This document shows, piece by piece, positions 7,619-56,328 of a DNA stretch of 64,000 nucleotides. Origin of the DNA: Polymyxa betae A26-41 (Eukaryota; Protista; Endomyxa: Phytomyxea); NCBI GenBank assembly GCA_003693705.1, contig RBZT01000125.1, positions 372,001 to 436,000 on the forward strand, in the 5' to 3' direction. Position 1 is the stretch's first letter, and the number at the start of each line of letters is the position of its first letter. Made by a program: the position numbers and the translations under genes. A model generated the notes under the pieces. The model had not been told where the DNA came from, did no database searches, and saw nothing but the letters and a program-made list of their open reading frames with translations.

Positions 7619-9071
7619 ATGAACAAGCCAGTAAATCACGAATTTGTCGTTGTTAAGCCGGACGATATCGAGTCGAGCTCGGAGGGACAAGCACCCGGCC
7701 GGAAAGAAAACGAGCTGGGCGAAGCTGAACCTAAGCGCTCTTCCCGCACGTGGACAACTGAAGTAAGATGGATCCAACAAAGAGCATTCTGACTGACTTT
7801 CGCTCAAGGAAGACGAGCAGATTGGGAAATTTGTTCGCCAATTTGGGACGAGAAAGTGGACGACAGTGAGCATGTTCTTGAAGCGATACACGGGAAAGCA
7901 ATGTCGTGAACGGTAATTGTGGCTTAAGCTAGCAACAAATCCAATCCAATTTAATCGCTATTTTAGCTGGCATAATCACCTGAATCCTGACATCCGTAGA
8001 GATCGCTGGTCCAAGGAAGAGGATGAGACCATCGTCAGAGAGCATATGGCTAGAGGCACCCGATGGTCGGAAATTGCGAAATCTTTGCCTGGCAGGTTTG
8101 GCTAGTCGTTTGCAGTAATGGTCTGTGATTGAAATTGGTTTTAAGAACAGACAATGCCATAAAAAACCGCTGGAATTCCACTATGAGACGTGTCTGCAGA
8201 CATATCAAAGCAATGCAATCAGGCAATACACCAGGCAGGCGTATTTCACTGCCATCTGGTGAAGAGAGTCAACTCTATCCATATTGCCTTTCATTGGTTC
8301 AGAACAACAGCGACGACATAACCATGTGCTATTAGAATAACCTTGACTGATGAATCTGTGTTTACTGTCTTGTTCAGGCCAATGTTTCAAGACCATAATC
8401 CTGGAGTGAGAATAGGCGAGGTTTACGATGCTGTTAAGCACCCGGATCATTCACCGATTTCTATCCCGATCCCGATCAGGCCTGTTCAGAACATGGGGGT
8501 GCAGAAACAGTCAATTCAGCAAGAACCAGTTGTGAGTCAGACCAGCTTCGAAACGGATGGACTCCCAGTTCCTATTATCGATGAGAAACTTCTTGGTGCT
8601 GCACAGATCTTGTTTCAATCGGCATCACCGAATAGCTCTGTAGTGCTCACTGATAATATTAATTCTAAAATATTCAATGTTTAGATTCTCGCAGCTCCTT
8701 TATCATGCATTTCTCAACGCTCTATGGGAAGTTGTGTCAAGTCGGCATCACGATTATTTCCCAGCCCTTGTTTATCGGATCGGCAGGGTATCACGCCACC
8801 AAAACAGTTCATCCAATATGACAATATGGAATTGGAACTAGGTCATCCTGCAGGTTTTCATCCCTACAAACCCATCCTATCCACAGCACGCTTTCATCCC
8901 GACATTACCCATCCTATTTCACAGCACGCTTTCATACCTACAAACCCATCCGATTTCACAGCACGCTTTCATCCCTACAAACCCTCTGCCGGAAAGTTCC
9001 CTACCAAGGGTTGTGGGCCTATTAGCGTGACACGCGCACTACTTTTGATCTTTCGCTCTCCAGTGCAGTAA
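7619..9071 (+). CDS. R2R3-type MYB transcription factor, multi-exon; 3' end approximate
   Basis: WTTE|[61 protein letters not shown]. Confidence 0.9.
8856..8984 (+). repeat. Minisatellite, about 3.5 units of 36/38/37 bp (TTTCATCCCTACAAACCCATCCTATYYCACAGCACGC)
   Basis: Read directly from the sequence; lies in the last MYB exon/ORF. Confidence 0.95.
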
Positions 9072-9149
9072 AAAGTAGAGTGACTGTGTCGGTGGGCCGT
9101 CTTGAAATCATTTCATATAGAGCCATTTCGCTTTTTCCTTCATTGAGCC

Positions 9150-11890
9150 ATGCAATCGGTTCGCCTCAAGAGCCTACGCCAGACCGACCTGATCGGCCCG
9201 CTTCGAGCCTATATTAATCAGCACTTTTCCGCGAGTGAATCGTCCGGTTTGGATCCAGCTCTCGGTAACGTCCTGCTCGGCTTTGTGTTCCGCGACCTTA
9301 GTGGATTCTCTAGCTGACATTCAAATGTTTCGAGACCAGATTCTGAGGTATTGTAACGCTTCATCCCTCGATTTCGAACGAGCTCTGCACGCTCATGAGG
9401 AATATCTGGCCGCGCTAATGGGGCTGTTGTCGAGGTTCCCTTTTGGTGAGATCGAAGCGCCCAAGCTATTCAAAAAAAAAAACGTATCAGCAGTTACGGT
9501 ATGTCTTTTATTTGCTCGTCTATAAATGCTAACGATTATTAGGTGCAATGGTATGCAACAGACGCATACAAACCTCAAAAATTCGCCGTTTCGTATAATG
9601 TGGCCTTTGAACAGTCTGTAATCTGTTTTAACATTGCTGCTATTCATTCACAGCAAGCTCTATTATTCGATCGCGAATCATCCAACGGCATCCAGTCCGC
9701 ATGTAAAAGCTTTCTCAAAGCAGCGGGCATCTTCCAAACGATGGCGGCTACAATGAGCGGGGTATATGCTAATAATATGGATCTAACTTCTGGAAGCCTG
9801 TCATTTCTTTCAAACTTGATGTTCGCCCAAGCCGCTGCTCTTTCATTTGACTCAGCTGTTCGTAAATCTATGGCACCTGCTGTGCTTTCTGTTCTGGCAG
9901 CCGGTGTTACAGACGCCTATGCACAGGCAAGAACTGCATTACGTAGTCAGCCGGATTTAGCCAAATGGCTATCCAAGTCCGATTTCATTGACGAAAAGTT
10001 CTTGTCCTATCAAATTGGGTAATTTTGGAAATGTTGTTATTAGCGAATTTGAGGTTCAAGGACCCTGTCTAGATGTTTTGAGAGTGCTTCTCATTACTGG
10101 CAATCTGAGAAAGATCAGGCCGACTGCAAATACGGCGTCGTTATTGCTCGATTGCAGCTGTCCCAGCTTCTTTCACAGTCGGTGGCTAGCAGCGAGCCTG
10201 CTCTTGAGAGCTCTCGTAATGCACGAAAGGTTTCCATTTTTTATGTTTTTTATGTGATTCGGTTTCAATCTGATTTATCGATGTAGAAGTTGGACGATAT
10301 CGTTTCCAGTAAACTGAAGACCGCAATTTATGATAATGACACGATCTATCACTATTCTGTTCCAAGTTTTCCTGAGCTACCGGTCATTGCTCCTAAGACC
10401 GTTGTAAAGCCAACTCCTTTCGTTTTGCCTCTTGGAAAACTTCCTCGCGTAATACTTTCTTGTTTGAGACATAATCGTGCTAATTGACTGATAGGCATTT
10501 GATGGCTTGGTATCAGTTGAGATTCAGAAAGCTGTACAGCGTTTTAAATCCGAAATGTCGGATGATGTAGCTGCAATTTCTAACACATGTCTGGATTCCA
10601 CAGACATTTGCCGTTCTGCTCTGTCTGAGATGAACTTTCCTGCTGCATTAGATGCATTGGATGCTGATGCTCGCATCCCTAAGGATATCGTTGGCAAGCT
10701 CAATGATGTTAGAAGTGCAGTCAGTGCTACATTTGTGTAAATTTCTTCTGTAGAATTAAGCAATTTGTTAGGGTGGACTTGCAGTCTTGCAAAATCTTCA
10801 GGGAGAGATACAAGAAATGTCTACCAATGCCTGGTCTATTCGAGATGAAATCGCTCAAATGTTATCAAAAGAACAGGTCCTTTGTTTCATCAGATTTTTC
10901 GGAGAGCTAACGTTTAACAGGAAAATGAAGAAAGGTTTCGGAATCACTACCAGCAGAACTGGGAGAGAACGCCATCATCTGAAATCAATTCTACGTATCA
11001 TCGCGATCTGAGCACTGTCACTAAGTACTTGGAGCAAGCTAAAGAGGCTGATTCCAAGATCGCTACGCTTTTTGCCAACTCTCTTGATATGCTGTCATCG
11101 GTGTCTAAGCCCTTAGCTGAAATTGAATCTTCCCTTCCTGTTCTTGATAAGGTATTGATGTCTGTTGAGCAAATTTGGTATGTCTGACAAACAAGATCAG
11201 TCCGCTAAATCGGACGCAAGTGAGAATGTTCGGTCAATTCTTCATGAGTTGTCATCGTTACTCAGGAAACGTGATCGTCTCATTGACGACTTTGTTAAAG
11301 CAGTCGATTCTTTCGATCCGACTCCCACTGTTTTAGCAAATAAGGTATTGAATTAAGTGAGCATTGTGTGGTTAACTGCTCAACGGCCTTAGGATTCGTC
11401 TACCGTTGATGAAATACTTCAATCCCAAAAATCGCATTTTGATGCAAACCGCAATGCTATAGATGAAAATCTTGCTAGGCAAAGTGTCTTGTTTGATACT
11501 CTGGTTGATGCCAACCAAAAATTCGTGCAAAGCCACAAAGTATCTGGTGTTGAAGAACAACGCCAGAGATGTTTACAGAACATCAACGAAGGCATCGCGG
11601 CATTTGAAAAAATGCACAGAAATTTCGCTGAAGGCATATCCTTTTACACCGATCTGCTTAATGATTATCTGAAGCCGTTAAAAGATGTAAGAGACTCGTA
11701 TCTATGCATTCACCCGCTAACCCGAAAATAGAACGTTTTAGGCTTCGTTACTGCTCGAGACCACGAGGCTCGTCTACTGCTTGATGATATCTCCAGAAGA
11801 TTTGGTCAAGTTTCTATTTCGGACAGAGGAAATCCGGTGCCGAGATCGGTCCCACAAGTGCACAATCCATCTGCACCTCCTCGTTTTTAA
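9150..11890 (+). CDS. BRO1/ALIX (PalA/Rim20-like) ESCRT accessory protein, multi-exon
   Basis: VAFEQSVICFNIAAIHSQ, FLKAAGIF, MFAQA, YDNDTIYH, V-domain helices, FAEGISFYTDL; C-terminal PSAP. Confidence 0.9.
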
Positions 11891-11968
11891 TTGCATAAAC
11901 TTATTGTATTATTCTGGTCTCTTCAGACAAGTGACTTTATGAAGCATCTTTACGCTGTTCCCAAATTT

Positions 11969-13919
11969 TTATATCATCTCGAAATATCGATTTCGCTCCC
12001 AATCCGTAACGGATTTGTTAAATGCTTGGTACTCCTTTCGGAAGAAATTGCTGTAATGCTCAACAACATCTTCACCGAAGGCCTTGCGGGCAAAGTCGCT
12101 GTTCTCGAATGTCTCTACCCCAGAGAGTAATGATTTAGGAACCTCTGGAATCTGCTTCGCTTCGTAAATGTTTCCATTGAAACATCTGGGAGGCTCAATT
12201 TGCTGCTTAATACCTTCAAAGCCAGATGCAATTGAGGCGGCGAAGACCAAATAAGGATTGACGTCAGCGCCTTGATAACAGTTCACTACATCTTATAAAA
12301 GAAATCACTTGATCATACCTGGAATTCGGCATTCGATGCGCAGGCTCTTGCCTTTGCCTACCGCGCGGTAGCCAGCAGTTCTGTTATCATACGACCCTGA
12401 ACGCCTAAGTCAGCAATAAAATGAAGTGAACCAAATTGCCTTACAAGCTAGGCGAGTAGGCGCCCATGACGAACTTTGGAATCTTTTGTATGAATTCACA
12501 GTTGGCGCATAGAATGGCATGCAATCAGGAGTGAACTTTAACCAACCTGGTCATCATCATCAAAATCTGAGGCAGATGCTTAACAATATTTCCCAGACCG
12601 CCCAGGAACATTTTGAATTCAGGAGAGCACTTAATGCCATCGAAATCTTCGTCTCCTTGAAAAGCATTGACAGTGTTTTCCTGTTTGTCGTTTTGTTTCC
12701 ATAGACTAAGATGAACGTGACAACCACTGCCGGTGGCATCGGTAAAAGGCTTGGCCATGAATGTCACGCTGCATCCCATTGAGTCGGCAACTTCTTTTAA
12801 GCACTGCTTATAGACCACATGCCGATCGCTCATTGTCTTCGTATTCGAGTTAGCACTGAATAGAGACACAATCTGATGCAGGACACACCAGCGGTTCTGC
12901 ATATTTGACGTTTAACTCGTGCTGGCCGACTCCAGCTTCACCTTTGCTGTTTTCGACTGGAATCCCTGATAAACTGCAAAGTTTTGGTTATTGTGGACTT
13001 TGTGGAACGAACGTTGCGTTTACCGAAGGTGCTTCCTGAAACTGGAAGTCAAATCCTCCTCTCGAGTAGTTTGTAGTATGTGATAATCCTCGACGTGGTT
13101 TGAAACCGGAATAACATGGTTGGGATGATAGCCTAAGCATTAATTTAGTGATGATCATATTATAATAAACTTCGTTACTGTTCTTATTTGCATTAGCATA
13201 GGATGTTCGATATTGGTAATATTCTAATTCTGATCTTGACACTCAAAATCAACAATCTAAAATAGGGTACTTACAAACCTGTGGCTGCAAGCGCTCCAAA
13301 TCCTTTGTTCTTTATGGCATCTAATTGTTTCCGAAGAACAGAACGGGGAGCGTACTGGATCAAATCGTGATTTGCGTTGTTGTAATGAACGTCGCAAATA
13401 ATCATTGCTGTTCGGTCAAGCCATGAGGCAATTCGTAAGCTTGATAAATCCGGTATTAAATGCATATCGCCGTATCCTGAAATCTGTATGAGGCTTGAAA
13501 CAATCAGAGCAAATAAACTCTGGTACCCTTCTCCCAGTTAGCAAACGACATGTCTGGTATCGGGTTCATGCTCATATCGCATGCTAAGAGATAATTGCCT
13601 TTGCAAGCTGCGTCATTTGCCCATCAAGAATCTAAGAGCTGCCTTACAGCAATGCGTCCCATTTGTTAAACAGTCTTCCAGGAAAAATTCAGCATCAAAT
13701 CGTTTGCCCATCAGCCTCCCATATATATCACTAAATCCAACGACAACCGTACGAATATTGTCATCTGTTCCCACATCCATAAATTTCGCAGGTATCCTGA
13801 AACGAGACTCAACTCTTCACAAGCGATTTGAGCTCGTTAACGGTTATATGGCCACGAGGCACGGCCGTCGTTATCAAGCGATGCGCCCCAGCAGCGACAG
13901 ACACCAACCGTCTCAGCAT
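11969..13919 (-). CDS. Glutamine-synthetase-like gamma-glutamyl-amine ligase (bacterial GlnA4/PuuA-type) with mitochondrial-like presequence, multi-exon
   Basis: IRTVVVGFSDIYGRLMGKRF, CNYLLACD, WEKGYGD, ELEYY, ENSKGEAGVGQHE, KPF..GSGCHVHLSL, NSYKRF..SWAP, DNRT, IECRIPGADVNPYL, VTDWERNRYFE. Confidence 0.9.
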
Positions 13920-14257
13920 GATGGAGCAATGGGAAGACAGCAGTATTCAAGAACTGGATAAAGAAGGCGACTACACAGGGTTGCTGCTTTTTTCTTACTT
14001 GGTGTGGGGGGACTCACAGTCGAATGTAATGTTACTTTCCCGTCTCTTTACATTTCACCATTTAATAATGTCATTAGTTTAAAGCGTCTGGGCGTCAAAG
14101 TCACGAAGGAGGTAATGATGCAGCAGATGATCGCTGGGTCCGGCGTCGATTCCATGAATCGCAACCGGACCACATTGTTGCGGAATGCAAATTGTTGCAC
14201 GTTACAGCAGTTGGCAGCCGAAAGAATGCCTGTCCCAGGGCCAAATTTCCTATTGGC

Positions 14258-17200
14258 ATGGCCGTTGCCACTAGCGCCGTCAATGAGCTGTCTTTAGATT
14301 CGGCAAAGCAGCTCCGAAAGTGGTATGCCTATTCACGCGCCCACGAACTCATACCAAGCACGGCTTCTACCATTGCCAATCCAGATACGCCAAATGCATT
14401 CCTATGCTTGCGGTTGGACCGTCTTGAAGGTCTACTATGGCACAACGTGCTGGATACTGATTTCTCAATGATAATTTTATAGGTTTACGAATACCGCGAC
14501 AGGTTACTGAGCGATATGGTGCTGCCGCGACGCTGCAGATCTGCGTCCGTATCTCGTTTTTCCATGAGAGCACACGACGGTTCTTTGGTCGCACGGCAAC
14601 AACGCCAACGGTCGCCTTCGACGCCAGCTCCGATGGGACACTCGTTTTGAACGCCCCATTATATTTCCAAACGAGAATCTGCGACCCAACTGCGTTCGCC
14701 GTCGCTGAGCCCGTTCTCACTATCCTGGAACCTATTGATGGCGCTATAATTGAAAGCGTCGCGTTGGGATTTTGCACGCTAAACATTTTCGGTCGTTCGT
14801 TGTCATCTTTGCCCAGCTTGACCACGATGTCTGCATCTCGATCCCGCTCGTCGTCGTCAAGCTCATCATCAGCTTTGCATCGTCCGTTGTTTCAAGGATC
14901 GGCACGGGCCCTCCTCGTTATCGATCCTGCCGTAAATTGGAAAGATCGTTTAAAAGCAACCCCGGCTCGTCTTGTGTATGATATTCTGGACGCTTCATCG
15001 CTGCGTGATGCTGTGTCACATTTGATCCAAGATAATGAGCTTATCACAACGCAATCAATAGTAGCTGGCTTACCGCAACGTGCATTAGCAACAGTTCTGG
15101 CTCCGCCACCTTCTGCGGTTATTCAAATATCGTCCCCGAAAATTGCCATTCCAGAAGAAATGGAACCTCGTGCGCTACGGCATGTCGACAACCTTCGTCG
15201 TCGTTCCGGTGGCAAAGTCGTCAATCGACGCCTGATTTTGGGCGTTCACAACGGTCGACGATTCATTCATCCTCCAGTCGGATTAGAGCTAATGGCGGCT
15301 CCGAGGAATCAAGCCTTTAATTACGCGTTTGAAGGCACGACAACGTTGTCAGTTCGAGCATCGTTTGACGATCCTCTAATCGTTTTTGTCGTCGAAATTT
15401 TGCTGGAAATTGAATGGCAGACCGATAGCAGCAAGGTGCCTGAACGAGCTGTAATCTGTACTGGATGGACAGCACGACCGATATATTCGACAGAGCTGCC
15501 CGCCAATGACAAAAGGATCAATATGACCTTGCTATCAGTGCCAGGCCGTTCACCGTCAAATATGATGACGTTGGCTTTCAGCGATATTGCCATTTGTATA
15601 GAAGTTGGCATTCAGGATCCGAATCTGAACGCCATGGAACTACCCAGGTTATTAACTGCAGCAGATACTCAAATTGAGAGAGAACAAGATTTCGATCCTA
15701 TCGAGAGAAAGAGCCAGATTGGAGAACAACCACCGAGTTCTCAAGAAAAACAGTCGCCTCCCAGGACAAAACCGCCACCATCTAATTTCCTCAAGCTCGC
15801 AGCTGCACCAGCTGCCATCCTTATTGATGGTGCGATATGTCTAAATCATTTTAAGCTTCTTGCTTATGTGTCTCCAGGGGCATTGCCAAATTATGACATC
15901 TCTCTCGAACTGGAAGTTAACGACCCATTAAAAGCAGCCCGATACCAAGTGCGATCATGGACGTCCAAACATGGATGATTCTACTGATTCTGCATCTTAG
16001 GTCACTATAGAATGGATCGAAAGCATGGGCGCCCAGCCCTTCACCAGCATCGTCATGTTCATGCACATTTTTGGTGAAAAGGCCCTCGTCAGCAACCCAG
16101 TTGAACTCTCAGCAGGTTGGTCTCATTTATTTTTTCCATGCCAGACTGGATTGACGTAACACAGCTAGTGATTTCATTACGGGAAAGTCTTCATTAAGGC
16201 AAAACCTATCAATCAGTCATGCCATCTTCGTTAGAGGGCGCGACCACGATGAGTTTGTCAGCCGGATCTATGAGCAAAATGCAACTTTAGAAGTTTGGGA
16301 CTACAAATCTCAAATGTTAATCGGCCACGCTCGAATGAACTTGCGGCATACTTTACGACAGCGCCAGGTTTCCAGCTAGCGAACTACTATCGCTACCTTT
16401 TCAATATTGTTTGGTAGCCTTCAATTGAAGCGCGCGTAACCGTTAACGTTGAAGACTCCGACGATAACGTTCGTGGTCGTTTGGGGATTATGATTCGTCA
16501 TTTTGGACTTCCAGAAGAGCCTGATTCTGATTATGATGCTGCCATAATAACTCAGCCTCGTTCCCATCATATCCGCCGTGCTTTTGATAAATCATCTGGT
16601 TTGTCAATACTATGTTTTTGTTTCATAATCATATCCATTTGCTTAGAAATAATTGCTTTGAGCTCGAATCTGAATTCATCGCGGTCGGCTCAACCTATGC
16701 GAGTGATTGATCGACATGCGATTCTTGGTGATAAATTGGCTGAATATGGGTGGCACCACTCTGTTGCACAGCATCAAAATCACGTTTATGATTCCTATTC
16801 TGCACATGCCGATCAGCGTGCAAAGCTTCGCCACTTGAAACCAATCGTCAGTTACGTTGGACCTGATATACCGTCTTACTGAACGTTATTAGGTTCGCCC
16901 ACCGCTGTCGCCCTTGAATTCAACGAAAATGGAACGTGGTCTAGCGCTCATCGACGATTTCCGATCGCAAATGAAACAAGAAGGTGTGAAGAGGCTGATG
17001 CACCAGCAATGTCGTAAGATCCGAACCCGATTCGGGGAGGCGGTGCTGTTCCGTGCTCGGCTAAAGAATCCGTATCGTCAAAAGACTCGCTTTATGCTGC
17101 GTCTTCGTAATGTATAGCGATCGTTACCGTAATTTCATTAATAATCTTTTTTGTCATAGCATCCGGATGAAGCCCGTTTAGGAGGGTTACGATTAGTTAC

Positions 17201-20095: not shown

Positions 20096-21753
20096 TTAGT
20101 AAGTGATAACTCGAGATAATTTCTGAATACGGTTGAGCAAATGATCACCATGCTTAATGACAGACTGATACTGGGCGTTCTTGGCATCAGGTCGGCATGT
20201 GGCAATAATGCCACCGACCTACAAAGCGTTAGCTGATTCATAGCATCACACAAGTTCTGATAACCTTATCAATCTTGCAGTTTAGCCTTCCTGCTGCAAT
20301 ATGTTCTGACAAAGACTTGTCAAGCAATTCTTCCGATATAGAAAAGGTATTTGCCATAGACGCAATCTGCAAAATGTTCGATAATTAGCACGAGCAAAAG
20401 AACCCAGCTCTTATCGTACGGTTATGGAACGATATGACTGCAAGAACTGCCTATAAGCGACAACTCTAAGCTCGCGTAAGATGTAGGCAACATGGCGATG
20501 CAGATATGGGTCTAATTCAACCAAGCGCAATACTGACATCAGCGATGGGAAGAAAGTTTGGTATTCGCACTGTCAATTGTGTGAGTGTTTTGCACAGATA
20601 ATATCATTTCTCAACCTTAAACATAGAAGTCAAAAACAGATGCAAGTCGTCAACGTCGCGAATCACAGCAAGAACATCGGGAGCATTTACCAGCTGTTCA
20701 CGAATTATATTACGAGGCTGGGTTGCAATTAGTTTAGTTGTTCACATCCAACATCTACATAAGGACACACCTGGGTCATCATGGTACAAATGACAGTGTA
20801 AAGAACGAAGCGGCGGTAAGAAAACAGCTCGTAACAAGTAAAGGTCGAAACAGAATCGAGAAGCAATTTCGCTGCTTCGCTGAATTCACGACCAATCAAC
20901 AAGAAGGTCGCATTGTATACTTTAAGGCGATTGCGGCGTTCCCAGTCACCTCCTTTTTCAACCATTCTATTGGTGAACCAATTAGAGTTGTGATGACAAT
21001 CCTGCAACGTACATACGAAGAAGTTTCCTCGATCAGCTTCTTAACGGAAGAGAAGTCGCTCCAGAAAAGCCCCAACCGAATTTGGTCAAACATGAGGTCA
21101 ATCTTCTGACCGCTGCCGACCTATCAAAATTGAATAAACTGGATACACAGCATTGAACGGCTATCTTACCGTTTTGCTCATCGTTTCCTTGTAGCACTCT
21201 TCAGCTTTAGCCTTATCGCCAATGCGTGCATAGAATTCGGCTTTTCGCTAAAAGAAGTTATTATAAGATTTTAAAGAAAGCTCGCATATCATAAAGAGCC
21301 AACCTGAACTGCATCGCGAACTTCGCTTTCCCCCAAACTGTCAACAGCATCTTTGATCTTGGCCTCAATCTCAGCGAGCTCCTGGAATGGATATCAGCGA
21401 CTATAATACCTATTTTGATTATGTTGATTCCAAACATACTTGAGCGTTAATCACATCCAGCTTCTCTTGCAGCCCTGGGGCAGTTTGGAACTTTGAGTCA
21501 TGAGATGTCACGTGTCTTAGGAAAGGGCCCATCTCTTCAAAAACCAAATGAAAATTCGATATGAAGCTTTTAGTGCATACTAACTGTGTTCCTCAATAGC
21601 TGAGAGCAATTTCTTCCTGAGCTCAGTTTTTTGAGCACGGCTGGTGACCGAATCGTCCAGAGCTAGACGGGTCCGAACCTCAAGCAACTCCATCAGCAGT
21701 GCCTGAGATTCCCCTTGCTTCACTTCGTCCTTTTTCAGTTCCCAATCAAACAT
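20096..21753 (-). CDS. PSMD6: 26S proteasome lid subunit RPN7/PSMD6
   Basis: FGESEVRDA; [13 protein letters not shown]; [12 protein letters not shown]; PCI domain; [30 protein letters not shown]. Confidence 0.95.
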
Positions 21754-24084: not shown

Positions 24085-25579
24085 ATGTGGCTCTATGGCG
24101 TACTATTAGCTTGCTGTGGATCTTTGTTCAGCTGCACGGGGCTTAACCTCCAACGGCTGTCTCAGGTCGTTATCGCCTGCAACATGCAACCCTGCAGAAT
24201 TACAACCCTGTCGTTCAGGTTCGTAATGCGAAACTGCCAATACATCGACAGAAGCGTCCGCATCAGCAGCCTTTGAATATCCTTGGTAAACACCCCCAGA
24301 ACGACAATTTCTTTCTTAATTCGCCTAGGAGTATCCTTCATGGTTCTAGAAGCGTTTTTCGACATGTATCTTGATCATCAGCTTGCATTTCGAAATCGCA
24401 TTGATATATTGCTAGGGCTGCTTATGAGTTCTCATCGAATTCGACTTTGGCGCCGTTCAGCGCTCTAACGCTTACTTTGAATATGGTTCTTGCTCCAGCA
24501 ATCTCAAACGAAAGAATACATCTGCAAGATGTATTCGTGTCTGCTGTTAGTATGGTTGGAAAAGCAGTTTGGACTGGAAATCTAAGCTCTGTGCAGATGG
24601 TCTTTGCGGGAACATCCATAGCTGTCAGGTTCAGCAATCATGAACCGCCAAATCTTGAACTCGCCGCCTTGATCGAAGTCTTGACACGCCCCATAGCACT
24701 CATCTGCTTATCGATTTTTTGCCTTTGGATTGTCCGCTTCTTAATTGCTGTGAAATCCAATTTATTTACATGTATACAGGCACTCCTTTCGATATTTATT
24801 CATGCATGTGATCCATCCAAGACCTTTGAGTACGAATATCGACAGCGTCTGCTTCAGGAGAGCGCACACCTTGAGGTTGGCGCTAATGACGTTTCGATTT
24901 TAACGAAGCTAATGCTATTTTGGCGTTTGTAGCTTAGTCCTGGAGATTCCATGACTGATCAACCTGAGAGGCCCTCTGAGCGTTCATGCCTTCAAAGTCT
25001 ATGGACATGCTCGTTCTTCAGCCTAACTTCAACCAATTGCAAGCTTCGTCTTCATCGATGCGCATTGCCGCTGTTTGCAGGATCAGTTGGTGCATGTACA
25101 GCCCTACTTGCCAAATCGCTCAATGAATTGCTCTACGTAACTTTAGCTGGCGACAATCAGGCATGCAATTTCGCTTTGCCAGCTTGTCATTTCTTAATCA
25201 GCTCCATTTAGTTTCATTATTTCGGGACCTGGATCATAGCTGCTCTATTGATCATCTCTGCATCTACACAGATAAAGTTCCTTAATATCTCCTTGCGCTT
25301 CTACGAGTCGCTTTGGGTAAACATCGCTGTCGAATGATGATATCAAAGTAAACATGTATGCAGGTTGTACCGTTATATTCTTCTTCATATATCCTCATGG
25401 CGTCCTCCTTTACAAGCATGGTGCTTGGTGATCTTGAACGACTAAGGGGATTACATCTTTTAGGATTCTTTCTGGGAATATTGTTGACCTTATCTGGCGT
25501 CTTCATTCTGTTGGTGCGAACTGCTGAGCATAGAGTTGGCCTGGTTTTGGATGATCCCAATGGCAGTACTTACATATAA
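24085..25579 (+). CDS. NIPA-type Mg2+ transporter (DUF803), multi-exon
   Basis: GSLFSCTGLNLQRLS; LAPFSALTLTLNMVLAP..NE; GSVGACTALLAKS; GDNQF; VVPLY. Confidence 0.85.
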
Positions 25580-25757: not shown

Positions 25758-28700
25758 TTAGACACTACGCCTCGTGCCTGTGCGCTTGGTATTCTGTTTC
25801 TCCAGCCTGGCGTTTGAAGCCCTATCAATACCAAAGGTGCTGAATACAGGAGTGCTTGTGCCATCATGTACTGCCGCTCGCAGTAGACCTTCCAATGTCA
25901 CATCAAATTCAAAATCGTTATTGACCGATTTCAAGTCTGAATCGCACATCCATTCAGGAACAGCTCGTTTGTTTTGCAGATCAAAGTAGCCAGATATTGT
26001 CGAAAACAGCCAACGCAATCGGTGCATTGGCAATGCTTCAGTAGAATATTTAAAATCGCTTGGAAGCCAGTCATTTGGCAGATTCCCTCGCGATGCCTTT
26101 ATGTCGTCTGATAACTCGACGATCGTTGGCAGCTTTGATTCGGCAAAGACGGGTGGGGATTGCTTGGCTGATACGAAAGAAAGAACATGTGAGATTCTTT
26201 TGGCATTCAGAGGACCGAATCCAGTATTCCCTGCTCTATACCATACGTGTTTGCACATGCCGTTGTCGCTTTTACCGAATTCTTGTATCCTGTTCTCGAT
26301 GTTTATCAGCGCTGATTGGGTGAAGACACCGTCATGAAAATATGTGAAATGTCGGCGAAAAAATTGTAAAATATTGTAGCCAGACAACGTAAGCTGTACG
26401 CATACGAATTAGGAAGGAAGCAGATATTGCAGTCACTAAACATACCGAAGTAACCAGCAGTTCGTCAGCGTGCTCTAAGGCTTGCGCGATACTGAATCGT
26501 TCTGATGAAAGGGAATCGGGCTGTTCGTCTCTTCCAAAATAGGTACGAATCCGTCGACTGTCATACCCATATTGGTGGCAAATCTGTTGCAGAATCCATT
26601 GAAGTAATTTTGCGAACTCGAGCGAAGTACAGAACGTAACGGCTGGTTGCGATGACATGCCAGAAACGGGGCAGAAATGATCCAGAAACGACAGGATTTG
26701 ATAATCGAATAGATCAACAATACGATGATAGCAATATGTTGGAACAAGACGTATTGGAACAGAGATGTGCCGTTTTTGCAGAAAATCCGGATTCAGATCG
26801 GGGTCAAATCGGCACAGAACACGACCGGCAAAGTCAATAACAGAAGACGGGATCATCGCACCCAATGCGTATACAACCGAAGCCAACGAACACACTCCCA
26901 CCAATGCCTCCAGATTTCGTTCCGCTTCGTCCGCTAATCCGAACTGCTGCTCGAGATAAATGGCGAACACATCCTCCAGAATCACATAATCCCATTTCGA
27001 GCGGGCAGGTAGCGCTTGCATCATCGTCCCGATATGATCGAATGCCACTGTGCATTGGGGCGAGAAGTTCGCCGTCCATTCCCGATTGTTTTGCTTCACC
27101 CAGATCCCTGGGTCCGCATAGCAGTGCGCTGCATACGCCGACGCCATAGTCCTCGACGTCGCCATGGTCGTGGTCAGCACGACGAACGCCGCTTTAGCTG
27201 CATTGAGATGAGAGGCGACGAGCCGAGTCGTGCCACTCTCTGAATCGCTTTCGATCACAACCAGACGAGCCTTATCGAATGGGCTTCTACTCAAATCGAG
27301 ATGGGAGGCACCATGAGGAAGAGAGGCCGCTCCGCTGACAATGTCGATCACGTTACCCAGTCTGGTATCAAAAGGGGAAGCGATCACCTGCCCTGCACCA
27401 GGCTCATTGTGAAATGGGACTTGTTCTGGGATCTCGATGATCGAGATCATGCGCTTGCAGGCGCCGGTGCAGAAAATCACTCGCCCGTTGCTGAATCCGG
27501 GCCGGAACCGCGATGGGTAGATGACCGCCTCAGCTCGGATGCGGTCGACCGACAAAGTCGAGAGCCAGAACGTGAACAGAGCGGCGCGAGCGTCGCCCTC
27601 TCGTGTCTGATGAAGAGGGCAGAATACGGCATTGCCTTCTTCCAGATCTTGCGCTCGCCATCGGGTCCCATCGTCCCGGATTACGACCCGGTCGCCGTCG
27701 ATAGAATCGGCCTGCAAGTCGAGTGGGATTTGGCTCTGATTGGCTAAAAGCCGTTGCCGAAACTCGTCAATGACATCCTGTTTCATTCGATCCCAAACGG
27801 TTCGCGATTGTCGCAGGAATTTCGGCGCCCATGTGACATGCCGGTCCTCGTCAGGCAGATCTTGGTACCCTTCAGGATATGTTTTACGGGCCACCAGCGT
27901 GCATATCGAATCTGGCAATGGCCATAATCTGATAGCATATCTGTTAACGACAAAACTATCGGGTTGGTGGACCAGGCAAGACTGCCACTGTTCAAGTGAG
28001 TATGAGAACCCTTCTTCGGGATTGTCGCAAAATTTGATCGATTCAGGAGCTGGACGTTCCGGGTCTGTTGCAAACTGAGTCGGAACAAGCCGTAATATTT
28101 GTTGATTATCCATTCTTGAAGCTCCTAGCAGAGGCAAAGCCTGGATGGGTTCGTACATTGTGCTGTTGATGATACCTTGCGAGACGGCAGCTTCCATCAC
28201 ATTCTGCAGTATATCTGGTGCTTTTTCCTCGGATAACTGGCGTCGAAGCTGACGCAGCTGAGTGTAGAGACCAACCATCGCCTCTTCGATATACTCACGC
28301 ATGGACACGTGATGATCATAGAAGATCACTTTCCGGAATATGACAAACCAGCTTATACCACTTGACGTCGATGCGTTCATACAGACAATATTCGACTCGT
28401 CAACATCGAGTCGTGTTAATGACGAGAAAGCCGAGCGCAGATGTCGGGCGAAGTATCGTATGGAAATGCTAACTATAAGCCGTGAAGCAAGGGCGTTCCA
28501 ACTGGTTTGAGATGGAGCAGGTACATCGATGCAGTAATAAAAGCAAGTATGACGCATACTGTCGGTTAAGGTTTCGTAAAGATGGTGTTGTTTGTTGGAG
28601 CTTCGCAGCGATAACATCCGATGCATTTCTGATGTAGAGCGTGCTGTGTAGTCCTTTCCATATTCTAAATTTGTGTCAGGCGCAGCTGCACCTGGACGAC

Positions 28701-28800
28701 TGATTAAAGGGCAATCCCGGGCCCAGATTCTTTCATTGTCGCGCAAATCGCGTCTTGCAAATGAGAACTGCTTATGCCAGCATCGTATTGAGGTGGACAT
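25758..28800 (-). CDS. PrimPol-type AEP primase + CHC2-like Zn finger + UL9/origin-binding-protein-like SF2 helicase fusion (~996 aa), predicted catalytically inactive; exons 28800-26446 and 26393-25758
   Basis: Colinear motifs with PrimPol (HLYETL, FYYCID, NASTSSGISWFVIF, IINSTMY..ALPLLGASR) and UL9-like helicases (VIESDSESGTT, VILEDV, VYALGAM, VTFCTS..FAK, TSLTLSGY); a 52-bp GT-AG intron (26394-26445) joins the two ORFs in frame. Confidence 0.78.
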
Positions 28801-29322: not shown

Positions 29323-29908
29323 TCAGTTGATTTTGAGAAGTTCGACATCAAACAGGAGGGTGGCATTTGGAGGAATAATGTTCTAGTTAGTCAATAAGAA
29401 TACAGCAATGAGAAATTACAGGGTGAAACATACAGCAGCTCCAGCAGCACCATAGGCGAGATCAGACGGAATCGTCAACTTTGCACGTTCTCCCATTTTC
29501 ATTCCTAGAAGCGCTTCAGCATGGAATCTGGTGAGATTGCTACTCAAAAAAACTTACGTAGAACAGCCTGATCCCAACCGGCAATAACTTCACCCATGCC
29601 GACTCGAAACTGCATAAACATTTAGCCTACACGAAACCTGTTTGTTACAATGTTCACCTGAAAAGGTTTGTTCTTATCACGAGAGCTGTCGAACTTGACC
29701 CCATTTTGAAATGTGCCAATATAATGGACCTAGTAGAACAGTAAATTGGCCAGCAGACAGCACCATAACAAGTTTGTTTTACAGTGACGCGATCGCCCGG
29801 GTGTGGGCAAGGACCAGTTCCTTCCTGAACAATTTCTGAAGCGGCAACTTGTCAGTTTCAAATCCAGACACGATTCAAATCAATAGCACCTTTAGCGACA
29901 GAGGCCAT
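29323..29908 (-). CDS. FKBP12-type peptidyl-prolyl isomerase, multi-exon
   Basis: [65 protein letters not shown]. Confidence 0.95.
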
Positions 29909-43235: not shown

Positions 43236-44690
43236 TTAAGCAGATGGAGCGGTATTTGCGAAAGACCGATCGATATCACTAATATTGGCAACAGCGGCTG
43301 TACGACGGACTGTCTTCATAGTTTTTTCAAGATTGCTGGCATCAACTTGCTCATTGCGAACAATGATGTTCCCGAACCGCGTAATCTGCTCCTCGTTTGG
43401 CCGAGAAGCGTTAACGACCTCATCTTCATTATCATCCTCAAAACGCTGATTACGTTCCGGTTCGGCAGTAGAAGATCGTTTAGACGGAGCCTTAGCGGGA
43501 GAACTCTGTTGCGATGGCTGTTGCTGGCCACCGAAGATAAAGTTAGCGAACGAACTGATGCGCTTGCCAAGAGCCGCATTCTCATCCCCGTTTTCGCTAA
43601 TGTTGCGAGGGGTGCTGTTAATACTGGTGATAGGTTCCTCGCGGTTCGGCTCGTCTTGGCGAACGAATTCAGAGGTCTGACGGACTGGACGGAGATCTCG
43701 AACAGGACGAATGCCAAGTTCACTGATTGGAACCGGCAGGGTGTACTCGAACAATGCCGGCCGCTCCAAGTGAGGAGTCGGCATTTGTCGGCACGTGTTA
43801 ATGAACACTGATCGGCAAACAGCATCGTCAATACCGGCAACACCGGTCATGATTTCCATGGCCAGCTCGGTCATAACAGATCCCATCGTTTTGACTTGAC
43901 TGGCGAAAGTGGTCAATGTCTCTCGAGTAATTTCGATACGTTTGGTCTCCAGTATCTCAAGCTTGTTCTTCAAGAGTGGTCGTTGAGCCATGTACTTCGT
44001 CAACCATGCGTTAGCTTCATCAATCTGCTCCACGTACTTGACGATCGTTGGGGCAGCTCGACGAACAGCATGGCCTTTGCGAGCAGGCGTCTGATCGAAA
44101 TATTCAGGAGTCATGACGACGGAAAGCGCCTTGTAGCATTTGGCTTGGCGCTTGGCGATGCTCGTGTGGAAAATAGAAAGCGCTTTGTTCAGCTCAACAT
44201 TCCAAATAGCACTTTCTTTCAAACGCTGTCGGCCACCGATGACGACTTTGTCGAGAGGACTAATTAGGCGGCCAATGGCGGCGCTCATCTCTTTAGTAGA
44301 TTGCGACCACGTCCGACATAATCGCATCGCTAGTTGAAGCTGCGTCCAATATTCCCGATAAATAGCAGCCTCTTCAGCAGCAGGCCTAGCGCGAGCCAGT
44401 TCCCCAGCAGAAATTGCAGCTAGTTTCTCTGCGAACTCAATCTGAGCAGCGTTCAAAGCCTTCATGAAGGACACCATTCGCTCAGAAAGGGTGGCACCAC
44501 ATTGGGTTTGACGCGTCACCATCCAGAAATCAGCCTCGGTTCCAAGAGGAACCAAAGGTGTCTCATTAATTCCTGTGTCAAGACTCTCTGCACCATTAGG
44601 AAGATTCGAACCTTCAGAGATAATCTCGACGCAGGATTCCGAATCGGAAGACGAAACGTATTCCTGATCTTGTTGGTTATTTGAAGACAT
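43236..44690 (-). CDS. F-BAR (FCH) domain protein, intronless
   Basis: F..V..GATLSERMVSFMKALNAAQIEFAEKL; YVEQIDEAN..Y..LEILETKRIE..F; P..FEY; disordered tail. Confidence 0.72.
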   Translation of the reverse strand: MSSNNQQDQEYVSSSDSESCVEIISEGSNLPNGAESLDTGINETPLVPLGTEADFWMVTRQTQCGATLSERMVSFMKALNAAQIEFAEKLAAISAGELARARPAAEEAAIYREYWTQLQLAMRLCRTWSQSTKEMSAAIGRLISPLDKVVIGGRQRLKESAIWNVELNKALSIFHTSIAKRQAKCYKALSVVMTPEYFDQTPARKGHAVRRAAPTIVKYVEQIDEANAWLTKYMAQRPLLKNKLEILETKRIEITRETLTTFASQVKTMGSVMTELAMEIMTGVAGIDDAVCRSVFINTCRQMPTPHLERPALFEYTLPVPISELGIRPVRDLRPVRQTSEFVRQDEPNREEPITSINSTPRNISENGDENAALGKRISSFANFIFGGQQQPSQQSSPAKAPSKRSSTAEPERNQRFEDDNEDEVVNASRPNEEQITRFGNIIVRNEQVDASNLEKTMKTVRRTAAVANISDIDRSFANTAPSA

Positions 44691-45585: not shown

Positions 45586-45948
45586 TGAAATCAGCAATGT
45601 AAAGGATAAACCAATCTGATTGATATTTTTGTCCGTCGACAAATTAGGGAGGCTTCCTGGTACACCTTATACATGGCCTTATTTCTCATATAGCATAGAT
45701 CATACGATTCTGGAAGTACAGCACAGATGGCAGCAACAACCATCACCAGATTCTGCTCTCTTGGCGATTAGCGCTGATTGCCTCCTAAACCTGAATGAAA
45801 CGCCTGGATAGTTGATGTTGACGAGTGCAGGAAACATTCTCGCTCAGATTGACAGACTTGACCGTTGAAGATTAAATCAATTCGAAATCGGAACTGTTTC
45901 CATCATTCTACATCATGCAGGACCACCCTTTTTAGTCGGCTTAGATTG

Positions 45949-47925
45949 ATGTCAGTTTTTGTTCCCAATCTCATGAAGCGCGAGTTTCTTCTAATTGCTG
46001 CTGCAATCTGCGTAATCATCGTGATCGCTGTGGCGTGCTCAACTTCTGGAGCTGCCGATCATGACCGTTTGGGGAGTCGATCTACCAAGAATGTACACCA
46101 GATAATCAAAATGCTGAATTTAGGAAAGGTTTCAGATGTTGATATCATAACATGGCGATTGATAGCCGTATATGCGAGCAAAACTGGAAAATGGCAATCT
46201 GTGAAGCTAATTTTGGATCGAATAACTGGCATCATTGGACATTCTCCAACGCTGGCAATTCTTTATATAGAATGTCATCGATCAGATTCAGCGTGCCATT
46301 TACTGGACAGACTGCAGACGTCATTGGATGAGAATGCGGCTGCCTTCATTCTACAGTATGGATTCCAGAATGGAGATTTCGACATTCTCAAGCTGATTCT
46401 AACGAAATTCGCAAATTCTGTGGAGACTCGGTTACGAGCTGGCCAATTACTTCAAGTTGCAGTTGCTAATAGAATCTTAGACGCCATAGAACCATTGAAT
46501 GGATTCTGCTTTTATTTCGATCGTGAAGCCGCTATTCAGACGGCTGTTCACTTATGTGATCTGGATTTAATTGTGGCTCTGGATGCCATCGATCAAGAGC
46601 GGCAATGGCGCTACAGTCTTGGACTTGCAGCGATGTTCGCGGCTTATGACGACCGCAATGAGAATCTGAGCTGGCACATTTATCAACATTTCTCTTTATC
46701 AACTGAACTTCATGACGCGGGCCGATTTGCCAACGTACTCTACCGCAAATGGTATTTTACAAGTAGAGATTGTGGCAAATCCTGGCACTATCAATTAACG
46801 CATCCAACACCTCCAGAGATTACAAGCAGTTCAGCAGAAGATAGAAGCAATTATCATTCAATCCAGCAATCATTAATTGATGGAATCATTCGTGGTGATC
46901 TGCCATCTATCGAGATCGCACTGTCTGAAATCCGACAGAGCAGCGACCTGTATGCGAATGCATTGATTGCGGGCTGTATTGTAGCCAGTAACCATAACCA
47001 GGAGGAGATTCTGCACCGATTAATGCAGTTAACCGATGAGAGAATTCGAGCTGGTATCATATTGGTATGTGGTCATACACGAAATCTACATTTACTCAAG
47101 TCGGCTATCGGTCTGCCACCTATTTGCGGATCGAGGCTCATGCAATCGGAAGTTGGACGGTTGATGGAAAGAGCTGTGATTATTGGAGACAAGGAGGTCT
47201 TCTCTATTGTCTTGCAATTTAAGGATCGAGACACAGCCAGTATGTGTGGCATGATTCGCGCTGCTGTATATGCTATACGTCATGGTGATAAATATTGGAC
47301 TGATGCTATGTTTCAAGAACTATCGATCTTGGAGCTTCGACATGTCAATCGGTTGCTGCTTCATATTATTGGAGCCGCATTAGAGACTGAACGGTATCAA
47401 TTAGCATTTGATTACTGGCGATTGCGATTTGAGCTGAACGAGCGCTCGGCCGAAATCCGCCACAATGCCCGAAGAGATCGTGAATATGCAAACGATAACG
47501 ATCGAGTTGGGGCTCCAGCATCAGATAGATATATGAAGCTCGGTTTTGCACTAATGATGTCAAGTATTCCAGCATTAGAACCACTTCCTGAACTGCTGCA
47601 AAAGATATCAAAAACAGGATACAAATATGATCTGCAGCACTGTGAGACCATTCTAATGCATTTGAAAGATAATTCCGAGCCATTCTGGACGAGGCCTGAA
47701 CGAGAGCCAGTGCCCAGGAATCTCTTTCTGCCAGATTATTGCAAACAGAGGCGACCAGATTTGTATCCTGAATTTGCTGGAACACCTCCTTTACCTCTTC
47801 CGAATGGTTGGCACGAGCTGGCTAAGGCTGTATTGATGGATTTAGAGGATTGGGGACGAAACGCTCCAGTGCTACGAAGGACAACTGAGGGCATTCCCGA
47901 CCATCTCAGACCAATCAATACATAG
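45949..47925 (+). CDS. Intronless signal/anchor-bearing helical-repeat (degenerate ankyrin-like) protein; candidate effector
   Basis: Hydrophobic FLLIAAAICVIIVIAVAC; repeats such as YGFQNGDFDILKLIL, AVHLCDLDLIVAL, GIIRGDLPSIEIAL, AVIIGDKEVFSIVL. Confidence 0.6.
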   Translation: MSVFVPNLMKREFLLIAAAICVIIVIAVACSTSGAADHDRLGSRSTKNVHQIIKMLNLGKVSDVDIITWRLIAVYASKTGKWQSVKLILDRITGIIGHSPTLAILYIECHRSDSACHLLDRLQTSLDENAAAFILQYGFQNGDFDILKLILTKFANSVETRLRAGQLLQVAVANRILDAIEPLNGFCFYFDREAAIQTAVHLCDLDLIVALDAIDQERQWRYSLGLAAMFAAYDDRNENLSWHIYQHFSLSTELHDAGRFANVLYRKWYFTSRDCGKSWHYQLTHPTPPEITSSSAEDRSNYHSIQQSLIDGIIRGDLPSIEIALSEIRQSSDLYANALIAGCIVASNHNQEEILHRLMQLTDERIRAGIILVCGHTRNLHLLKSAIGLPPICGSRLMQSEVGRLMERAVIIGDKEVFSIVLQFKDRDTASMCGMIRAAVYAIRHGDKYWTDAMFQELSILELRHVNRLLLHIIGAALETERYQLAFDYWRLRFELNERSAEIRHNARRDREYANDNDRVGAPASDRYMKLGFALMMSSIPALEPLPELLQKISKTGYKYDLQHCETILMHLKDNSEPFWTRPEREPVPRNLFLPDYCKQRRPDLYPEFAGTPPLPLPNGWHELAKAVLMDLEDWGRNAPVLRRTTEGIPDHLRPINT

Positions 47926-53725: not shown

Positions 53726-56328
53726 TTAAAGATCACGCTTTTCCTTGGATTCTTTTAATTCAACAACTCTGTTGAACACTATCCTTTCAGCGGTGGTATC
53801 TGTATCGACAATGAAGTAGCCGAGTCGTTCGAACTGAAACCTGCTGCCAACAGCAACATCCTTCATCATCTCATCAGCCAAAGCAGTTTTCTTGACGACC
53901 AACGACTCGGGATTCAGGTCGCTGAGCCATTCCCCAAGACCAGCCGGGTCCATTGATTTGAAGAGGTGATTATATAGGCGAACTTCGACTTGAACCGGGT
54001 TCTTGCCAGAGACCCACGTGAGAATGCCTAGCGAGAGGGATCAACAAATTCATATCAGATTGACGTTAGCGAGACCCACCTTTTACTTTCGCTTTTGATT
54101 CCTTATCAACCGAGCATAGAAGCTCGACGACATCACCGTTTTCGTCAGTAATGACCTTATCACAAGTGATGTGGAAAGCGCATTTCAAATGCACCTGCAA
54201 AACTGTTTAAGACGACTGTTGAAAGACACAATCTAGCTTGCGCACCTGCTTGCCTGGCGCCAGACCATAATAACCAGCGACATCTTCCATCCTGAAGTCG
54301 CTTCTGTCGATATAGACGACGTTGGAGATGGGGACCTTGCGAGTTCCCAGTTCGGGTCGCTTCGGGTGGATCGGGACATCGAGCATCTCGACGCCCTCAA
54401 AGTTGGTCAACCGGATTCGCAACGGGTCCAGTACGACCATGTTCCGAGGCGCTTGCTCATCGAGCTCGTTACGGATGCAGGCCTCGAGCAGCGACATGGC
54501 GATGGTGTTCTCAGCACGAGTAACGCCGACGCGCGCGCAGAACTCGTTGATGGCGGATGGTGTGTAGCCGCGACGCCGCAGACCGTTGATCGTGAGCAGG
54601 CGCGGGTCGTCCCACCCCTGAACATAGCGATCTTCGACGAGCTGCTTCAGCTTCCGCTTCGACATCACATTATAGGTGATGTTTAGACGAGAGTATTCCC
54701 AAACCAGAGGCCGGTACAGGTCGAGTGCCTCAAGCAGCCAATAGTACGAGTCCCGTCGTACCTCGAATTCCAGCGTGCAGAGCGAATGCGTGATGTGCTC
54801 AAGAGAATCGACCAGACAGTGTGTGAAATCATACGATGGATAGATACACCATTGATCACCAACATGAGGATGCGGCTCATACTTGATACGATATGCAATA
54901 GGATCCCACATACACGGATTCGGATGTCGAATATCGATCTTCATACGCAGGGATACCTCACCCTCCTTATACCGGCCCTGACGCATCCATTCGAATTTCT
55001 TCAGGTTCTCATCAGGATCCGTATCACGCCAAGGCGACGGTGCCTGCTCCATGCGTGCAGCTCGAGCCGCCTTGATCTCGGCCTGAGTCTGATGGCAGAC
55101 ATAGGCCTTGCCGCGCTTGATCAGGAGCTGGGCCAGCGCGTACAGCTGTGGGAAGTACTCGGATGAGTACGTGATGGCAGCTGGTTCATGTCCAAGCCAG
55201 TGGACATTCTCCTGAATCGAGTCGATATAGACCTTCTTCTCAGCTGATGGATTCGTATCATCGTAACGCAGGAAACAGGTTCCAGTCTTGGCCTTGGCAT
55301 AGCCGAATGAGAAGTTCATCGCCTTGGCATGACCAATGTGAAGGAATCCGTTGGGTTCAGGCGGGAATCGAGTCCTTACACGCCCACCTGTGATCTCATT
55401 ATGGATTTTGAGCAAATCGGGCGTGTTGATAGCTGAGTCTAGAGGACGAGCAATGAACTCTTTCTCCATCTCGGCCATGGTCATGACCGGAGCCAGCTCG
55501 GTCGATGATTTTGGGGCGGCGGCCGTTGTTGTACCGTCCTTCTTGGGGGCCTTGGATTTCTTAGTCTTCACCATATCTGTGAATGAAATGAGGAACGACA
55601 AAATGACACAAAGGTTAAATTCACCTTGTTCGGTTTTAGGACCCAAAAGGTTCAAAATCTGAGCATCCATCTCAGTTTTGACAGTGTTGGCATCAACGAA
55701 TGGCAGACGTCCTCGAATCATGCCCAACAAAGGGCCAAAAGCGTAATGATATCTATTTGAAATTTGAGATATAGAGCGGATACGATTAAGTTGATAATGA
55801 ACCTCTTTTGCTTGATCTCATCGACGAAGTTGCCAATTACGTCAGATACAGCCTGGGCGATCTCTTCGGGAGATGTCACCACACCAACACCGCATTTTGA
55901 TTCAAATGTGGCCTGGTCGAAGGTGGTGTTCTTGGAGAAGTAGTCGATAGCAGCAGCAACGTGTGCTGGGCTGCCCAATCGCCTATCATGTTATATCAAT
56001 AATCGGATTCTCTTTTATAAGCAAGCTCTGGTTACCCATCAACGATATAGGAAAGCAGCAGCTTTCTATGATTGAGAACAAACGGGGTGGGCTTCAGATT
56101 AGAAGCTACAGAGACCAATAGCTTTCCAATAGATTCGGAACATCCCGACACCAAGCCAGCCTAATGCATAGAGATTAGAGCGTGGAATGCCCCTTCAACA
56201 AATGCGATCTAATCAACCTCACGGATGATATTCTCGAGATTCTGAGCGTCCTGCTCGCTGAGCTGTGACACAAATTTGGGATTCAGGCCGATACCCAAGA
56301 GGAGATCATTGCGGTCGTGTGAGTGCAT
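53726..56328 (-). CDS. QARS1: Glutaminyl-tRNA synthetase
   Basis: TRFPPEPNGFLHIGHAKA, DSLEHITHSLCTLEF, MSKRK, GWDDPRL, FQFERLGYF; eukaryotic N-terminal domain. Confidence 0.97.

Follow-up and report, generated by a model that had tools for sequence, protein, structure and literature searches.

The stretch of DNA analyzed in our study, referred to as the window, comprises 64,000 nucleotides of Polymyxa betae A26-41 (GenBank assembly GCA_003693705.1, contig RBZT01000125.1, positions 372,001 to 436,000 of the forward strand). On its minus strand, at positions 25758-28800, this plasmodiophorid (Rhizaria) carries a two-exon gene whose product combines a primase-polymerase domain of AEP (archaeo-eukaryotic primase) type with a zinc finger and a superfamily 2 (SF2) helicase resembling the herpesviral origin-binding protein UL9. 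Judged from the sequence, both the primase and the helicase lack their catalytic residues, and the description of the gene as 'double-dead' in an earlier sequence-only reading is correct. We consider it probable that a PrimPol-zinc finger-UL9-like helicase of giant-virus type was captured and turned into a host gene, and that it was retained as a pseudoenzyme after losing both activities. Phytomyxea are a poorly studied lineage whose members transmit important crop viruses. To our knowledge, viral replication genes are common in protist genomes and nearly all of them either look active and lie in recent insertions or are broken relics. A solitary copy that is spliced, of full length and dead in primase and helicase would clearly be a candidate for the reuse of a viral replication protein as a pseudoenzyme.

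The loss of the catalytic residues was assessed by alignment with four mutually diverse active relatives, which are 27-68% identical to one another across the domain alignments and keep every canonical residue (DxE, SxH, the Asp of motif III, GSGKT and DE). The AEP remnant, of the PrimPol/herpes-pox type, was delimited with hhalign and a hidden Markov model (HMM) of the active sequences and spans residues ~45-241 (28078-28668, minus strand). In its motif I strand FYYCIDV (28522-28542, minus strand) the DxE of the active relatives is replaced by C90-I-D92. In the alignment, SxH of motif II reads S150-W-F152, the Asp of motif III is N212, and the Arg and Lys that follow motif III are P223 and R229, respectively. 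Similar replacements were found in the helicase. Here the Walker A motif of the active relatives, DAPMGSGKT, aligns with ESDSESGTTR (27223-27252, minus strand), in which Thr524 stands for the Lys (K524T) and Glu521 for the first Gly (G521E), and the Walker B sequence (V/I)LDE corresponds to VILEDV with the pair E609-D610 (26968-26985, minus strand). Motif Ia is changed from TFR to TTT and motif VI, in a weak alignment of exon 2, from QLxSRLR to NIENRIQ, with one Arg retained. Translation and alignment thus bear out all of the residues named in the sequence-only reading, i.e. CID, SWF, N212, P223, SESGTT and ED. The zinc-finger region (27457-27621, minus strand) aligns to CxxC...CxxC of the active relatives and reads C394-P-L-H397 ... 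C444-T-G-A-C448. It keeps four potential ligands, of which one is changed from Cys to His, and the second knuckle is longer by one residue.

The retention of some residues at the motif sites, namely D92, S150, G523, T525 and the acidic pair ED at Walker B, would allow the protein to be still an enzyme that works with non-canonical or shifted residues, for example with metal bound by D92 and further acidic residues and with E609-D610 as a swapped Walker B. We regard this as highly improbable. Two of the three metal ligands, the His of motif II, and the NTP-binding Arg and Lys were lost jointly, as were the Lys and the first Gly of Walker A, the Arg of motif Ia, and the Gln and the second Arg of motif VI, and every one of these lost residues is kept in all four active relatives.

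The homology to PrimPol-type AEPs and UL9-like helicases is real and beyond chance. All sequence searches and folds were run on each exon separately, never on the joined protein. The protein alone had no match in Pfam (searched with both exons), PHROGs or PDB sequences, and the Herpes_ori_bp model PF02399 itself scores neither exon. Moreover, a word-index protein search did not find the protein in protein collections, from which it is missing because the P. betae draft genome (1,001 contigs, 27,085,946 bp, GC content 45.1%) is unannotated (PMC6328671). When 1.84 billion cluster representatives were searched exhaustively with phmmer, three proteins were matched, P0001, P0002 and P0003. P0002 (959 residues, E 5e-10) and P0003 (1384 residues, E 2.8e-9) carry the Pfam domain Herpes_ori_bp at 6.6e-19 and 1.9e-10, respectively, and the link of our protein to the helicase family runs via these two. 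Both also give weak signals for AEP_C962R and Prim-pol 4 (PPL4). A profile search added two further family members, P0010 and P0011. The profile A3, built from five active relatives and exon 1 of the P. betae gene, matched herpes simplex virus 1 (HSV-1) UL9 (6.6e-16) as well as human PrimPol (1.9e-12, PrimPol residues 78-173) in the PDB. Besides, the first 300 residues were aligned to the active-only AEP alignment with an hhalign probability of 96.6 (E 6e-10, 184 columns). In the six frames of the 27-Mb genome the active-only AEP HMM had a sole match, which is located in our gene (28078-28686, E 8.7e-18).

Structural and language-model searches pointed in the same direction. The exon 1 model, compared with the PDB, gave 375 SF2 helicase matches at E<=1e-3, among which the HSV-1 origin-binding protein ranks 8th, and two RecA-like domains of SF2 type are present in the model. 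Against BFVD the best matches were giant-virus proteins described as 'superfamily II helicase', 'replication origin-binding protein' and 'PrimPol/helicase', which aligned in full length over 770-890 columns with a best E of 9e-12 and included several entries of Catovirus and Bodo saltans virus. For the AEP model, nearly all of the top 21 Foldseek matches were human PrimPol, monkeypox virus (MPXV) E5 or HSV UL52, with a best E of 4e-3. The structural match to be expected from the sequence-only reading was obtained for the SF2 part; for the AEP part these top ranks carry weak E-values. A language-model search with the whole exon 1 retrieved Herpes_ori_bp clusters with a score of 0.98, and residues 1-460 retrieved Nucleocytoviricota AEP_C962R/Herpes_UL52 clusters with scores of 0.95-0.97. 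Hence, the architecture proposed from the sequence is borne out by phmmer, hhalign, HMM, family profile and Foldseek, and so is the viral flavour of the family, as PrimPol and origin-binding helicases of giant viruses are the closest neighbours by structure and by language model.

The architecture resembles that of several known systems. PrimPol and UL9-like helicases of giant viruses (Nucleocytoviricota), e.g. the helicase origin-binding protein of Marseillevirus and the PrimPol/helicase of Clandestinovirus, likewise unite a herpes-pox AEP, a zinc finger and an SF2 helicase in one chain; F1055L from ASFV, the African swine fever virus, is usually cited for this type. These proteins are presumed to be active, whereas the P. 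betae gene is cellular, single-copy and spliced and has every catalytic motif replaced. Human PrimPol (PDB 5L2X, 7JK1) is similar in the AEP core, as seen via the family profile and the top Foldseek rank. However, it is active, lacks a helicase domain and is not matched by the sequence of the P. betae protein alone. Conversely, HSV UL9 (PDB 9HGI, 9HGJ) has an SF2 core of the same Pfam family as the nearest relatives of our protein, but it is devoid of an AEP domain, is an active ATPase and possesses a defined origin-binding C-terminal domain. For the retention of a replication enzyme fold without its catalytic residues, herpesvirus UL8 offers an analogy only: it is a catalytically dead homologue of family-B polymerases and provides the helicase-primase complex with a scaffold. 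In UL8 the fold was kept for a non-enzymatic role, although the fold is another one, the protein is encoded by a virus and its partner complex is known.

The sequence-only reading described exons of 785 and 211 codons joined in frame by a 52-bp GT-AG intron, and open reading frames (ORFs), lengths and intron sequence were found to be as described. Exon 1 (26446-28800, minus strand) encodes 785 codons from the ATG at 28800, two codons downstream of an in-frame TAA, and covers AEP domain and zinc finger as well as RecA-like domain 1 and the beginning of RecA-like domain 2. Exon 2 (25758-26393, minus strand) consists of 211 codons (26393-25761) and a stop at 25760-25758, and its first ~60 residues align to helicase motifs V-VI. 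Both exon lengths are multiples of three, and the total open length is ~1000 codons (996). Without splicing of the predicted spliceosomal intron (26394-26445, minus strand; 52 nt, GTATGT...CTAAT...ACAG) the reading frame stops 37 codons past the donor. In the neighboring FKBP gene four introns of 48-53 nt were read by eye, one of which likewise begins with GTATGTTT; this gene can serve as a local reference for intron signals of the host. Moreover, the alignment with the homologues crosses the exon junction, where ...DxLIVT(T/S) is followed by VLQAGHS, here LTLSGYN. The predicted intron is therefore supported by the match in size and donor to the FKBP introns and by the uninterrupted alignment at the junction.

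The gene occupies a fixed single-copy locus in a host gene context without element ends. It was found as a single copy in the assembly searched (27,085,814 bases, 1,001 contigs), in which there was no other match to PF02399 (Herpes_ori_bp), PF03121 (Herpes_UL52) or PF23162 (AEP_C962R) and no match to an NCLDV (nucleocytoplasmic large DNA virus) capsid protein. No surrounding provirus was visible. An active paralogue elsewhere in the genome was ruled out by genome-wide searches with the family models and the active-only AEP HMM. In line with the sequence-only reading, a repeat search of the flanks revealed no mobile-element ends, i.e. no terminal inverted repeats, long terminal repeats (LTRs), inverted repeats or long direct repeats. 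An FKBP12-type gene (29323-29900, minus strand) ends ~520 bp upstream, and one of its exons was confirmed as FKBP_C (4.7e-07). A multi-exon membrane-protein gene (24447-25579, plus strand) converges ~180 bp downstream. Of the two housekeeping neighbors proposed earlier, FKBP was thus confirmed, whereas NIPA is only weakly suggested by a sub-threshold match of the downstream gene to Mg_trans_NIPA (E 0.073), and the genome's 15 NIPA-like matches do not include this gene. Composition and codon usage of the primase-helicase gene are within the range of the other window ORFs.

This context bears on the question whether the gene is merely an unselected endogenous viral remnant. Such a remnant would have been degenerate already in the donor virus and inserted fairly recently, so that no stop has arisen yet, and P0001 would come from a related virus or insertion. 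Giant viruses carry multiple paralogues, as illustrated by the several Catovirus and Bodo saltans virus entries in BFVD, no orthologue was found in annotated proteomes, the erosion is spread across the whole protein, and four RNA runs, which do not contain the organism, had no reads on the gene. Nevertheless, we think a viral remnant unlikely. The gene stands alone, its host neighbors lie only ~180 bp and ~520 bp away, and the assembly gave no match to a further viral gene, a capsid or an AEP. A remnant would require the near-complete deletion of a large insertion while 996 codons stayed open. The host-type intron of 52 nt and the host-like composition speak against it as well. In addition, the frame does not outlast 2-5% of neutral change. 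In a simulation of neutral point substitutions, with the exons treated apart, 7% of the copies were still open at 0.02 and 0.1% at 0.05 substitutions per site. As the frame closes by ~5% neutral divergence and the replacement of the motifs needed far more change, this result argues for constraint.

A second indication of constraint was obtained from P0001, a fragment of 105 amino acids from a soil metagenome. It is 63% identical to our protein over 105 residues, gapless until the last few of them (64% over residues 4-103 in HMMER), begins at the same Met and carries the identical dead strand HTCFYYCIDVPAPS. The identities are clustered, with 26 of 28 positions in the best window (permutation p 0.002) and a longest run of 16 (p 0.011). 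An exact look-up of the contig of P0001 gave no match. If P0001 is orthologous, motif I was already inactive before the two organisms separated and has stayed conserved from then on. Accordingly, the selection for a non-catalytic role claimed in the sequence-only reading is supported indirectly, by frame survival, the host-type intron and the conserved block of P0001; that the gene is 'domesticated' is plausible on these grounds, though unproven.

Several observations weigh against a captured and retained pseudoenzyme. Exon 1 occupies 100 columns that do not vary among the four active relatives; 40 of these are kept and 60 are changed. The motif residues are kept at 3 of 13 positions, which does not differ significantly from the other invariant columns (Fisher p 0.23), and the strictly chemical residues at 0 of 7 (p 0.04). 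The erosion of the catalytic sites is thus little above that of other invariant positions, and to say that the hydrophobic cores are intact and the catalytic residues specifically lost overstates the contrast. A loss of 60% of the invariant positions would also be expected from long relaxed constraint. The only related fragment with a dead motif I is P0001, which has 105 residues and whose organism may be a plasmodiophorid or a virus. Moreover, no orthologue was found among ~15 billion proteins, a set that should cover the annotated proteomes of plasmodiophorids, nor in a scan of JGI metagenomes with the two most conserved blocks. The four RNA runs under the same species label contained zero reads on the gene and on the flanking genes. 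As the flanks also lack reads, the runs do not contain the organism and are no test of expression; their species label probably denotes the plant host or a mixed sample.

Further counterpoints concern the models and the weaker alignments. The AlphaFold (AF2) models were built from only six or seven sequences and are poor, with a predicted local distance difference test (pLDDT) score of 44 for exon 1 (50-76 within its helicase part) and 53 when the AEP domain was modelled by itself. In an exhaustive VIA search with the AEP model, UL52 reached a Z of 6.8 beside the unrelated LuxS with 7.1, which is in the range of noise. Exon 2 matches the relatives weakly (E 0.006, probability 6%), yet at the expected colinear place, and in its C-terminal ~150 residues similarity is not detectable. 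Besides, the correlation of codon usage with the window ORFs (r 0.53) barely discriminates the gene from out-of-frame controls (0.40-0.49).

Taken with these points, a retained pseudoenzyme would have arisen in two steps. Capture from a giant virus, or divergence from an active ancestor, would have come first, and both enzymatic activities would then have been lost while selection kept the frame open. The present role would be non-catalytic, with the fold that was kept, its Cys/His zinc finger and both RecA-like domains acting as a nucleic-acid- or protein-binding module, and the outcome might be a pseudoenzyme scaffold or regulator in DNA metabolism. More speculative is the idea that the non-catalytic captured primase-helicase is a dominant-negative or decoy which disturbs or senses the replication machinery of related viruses or of selfish elements, or became a new DNA- or chromatin-binding factor, with the dead strand FYYCIDVPAPS conserved as a binding surface. 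We hold this for doubtful, and no observation speaks for a decoy or dominant-negative function specifically.

The origin of the gene has to be considered separately from its function. The yeast chromosomal PrimPol-helicases, i.e. Starmerella bacillaris GMM52176.1 with its cluster (P0003) and P0002, P0010 and P0011 from Logan assemblies, are its only sequence-detectable relatives. They share 20-25% identity with the P. betae protein and are colinear with it from AEP through zinc finger to helicase. However, they keep DxE, SxH, the Asp, Arg and Lys, CxxC...CxxC, GSGKT, DE and QxxSRLR, and their genes are intronless, in contrast to the P. betae gene, and have longer C-terminal regions. In the literature, we found no account of a PrimPol-helicase fusion in fungi or of giant-virus remnants in plasmodiophorids. 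The analysis has uncovered, in chromosomes of yeasts, a few active genes for PrimPol-zinc finger-UL9-like helicases that have apparently not been described before and provide active comparators for experiments.

The presence of active relatives in yeast chromosomes beside housekeeping genes (S. bacillaris, P0002) is in favor of a vertically inherited cellular gene, i.e. an old eukaryotic PrimPol-helicase fusion that was kept patchily in yeasts and plasmodiophorids and is degenerate in P. betae. The S. bacillaris locus lies between Seipin/IDO and major facilitator superfamily (MFS) genes, and P0002 adjoins a fragment of a fungal fatty-acid synthase. Nevertheless, vertical descent, which concerns the origin of the gene and not its function, seems to us quite unlikely. 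The distribution is extremely patchy, with three matches in 1.84 billion representatives, and the nearest neighbors in fold and features are overwhelmingly Nucleocytoviricota. Furthermore, the S. bacillaris copy resides in a 5.35-kb unit bounded by direct repeats next to an LTR element, and it resembles an inserted or duplicating unit more than a core gene. Two IMG/VR scans with the family alignments matched no viral contig, and a helicase-only scan matched one (L009), probably of a phage, which is cut off at its end and uninformative.

The S. bacillaris locus was examined in assembly GCA_037102755.1, contig BTGC01000008.1 (L002 region 8850-15330). The homologue is located at 10001-14161 inside a unit of 5,352 bp, whose edges are marked by 39-nt direct repeats (8885-8923 and 14237-14275) of 97% identity. 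Its left end carries an extended array of 9-bp tandem repeats (8850 to ~9290), and a second copy of its last 52 nt follows just downstream (14123-14174 and 14284-14335). From its sequence it resembles what is left of a tandem or inserted unit more than an ordinary gene. Directly beside the homologue lies an LTR retrotransposon (L002 15184-20940) with ORFs of 1232 and 266 amino acids and identical LTRs of 141 nt (15184-15324 and 20800-20940). P0002 and P0010 (L003 and L005) are 57% identical and both originate from the Logan sample SRR29713745; they are either paralogues in one yeast or derived from two yeasts in one sample.

Elsewhere in the window, five ORFs of 443-730 amino acids are without a Pfam match at E<=1e-4, namely 14647-15978 (plus strand), 43236-44690 (minus strand), 45865-47925 (plus strand), 58447-60639 (minus strand) and 61635-63263 (plus strand). 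Much of the window is lineage-specific plasmodiophorid coding sequence. A fungal host, first suggested by the intron signals, was rejected in favor of a plasmodiophorid because a window exon for glutaminyl-tRNA synthetase (GlnRS; 54207-55730, minus strand) is 75% identical to its counterpart in Spongospora subterranea, compared with at most 59% to all else over 96-98% of the query and up to 64% at ~80% coverage.

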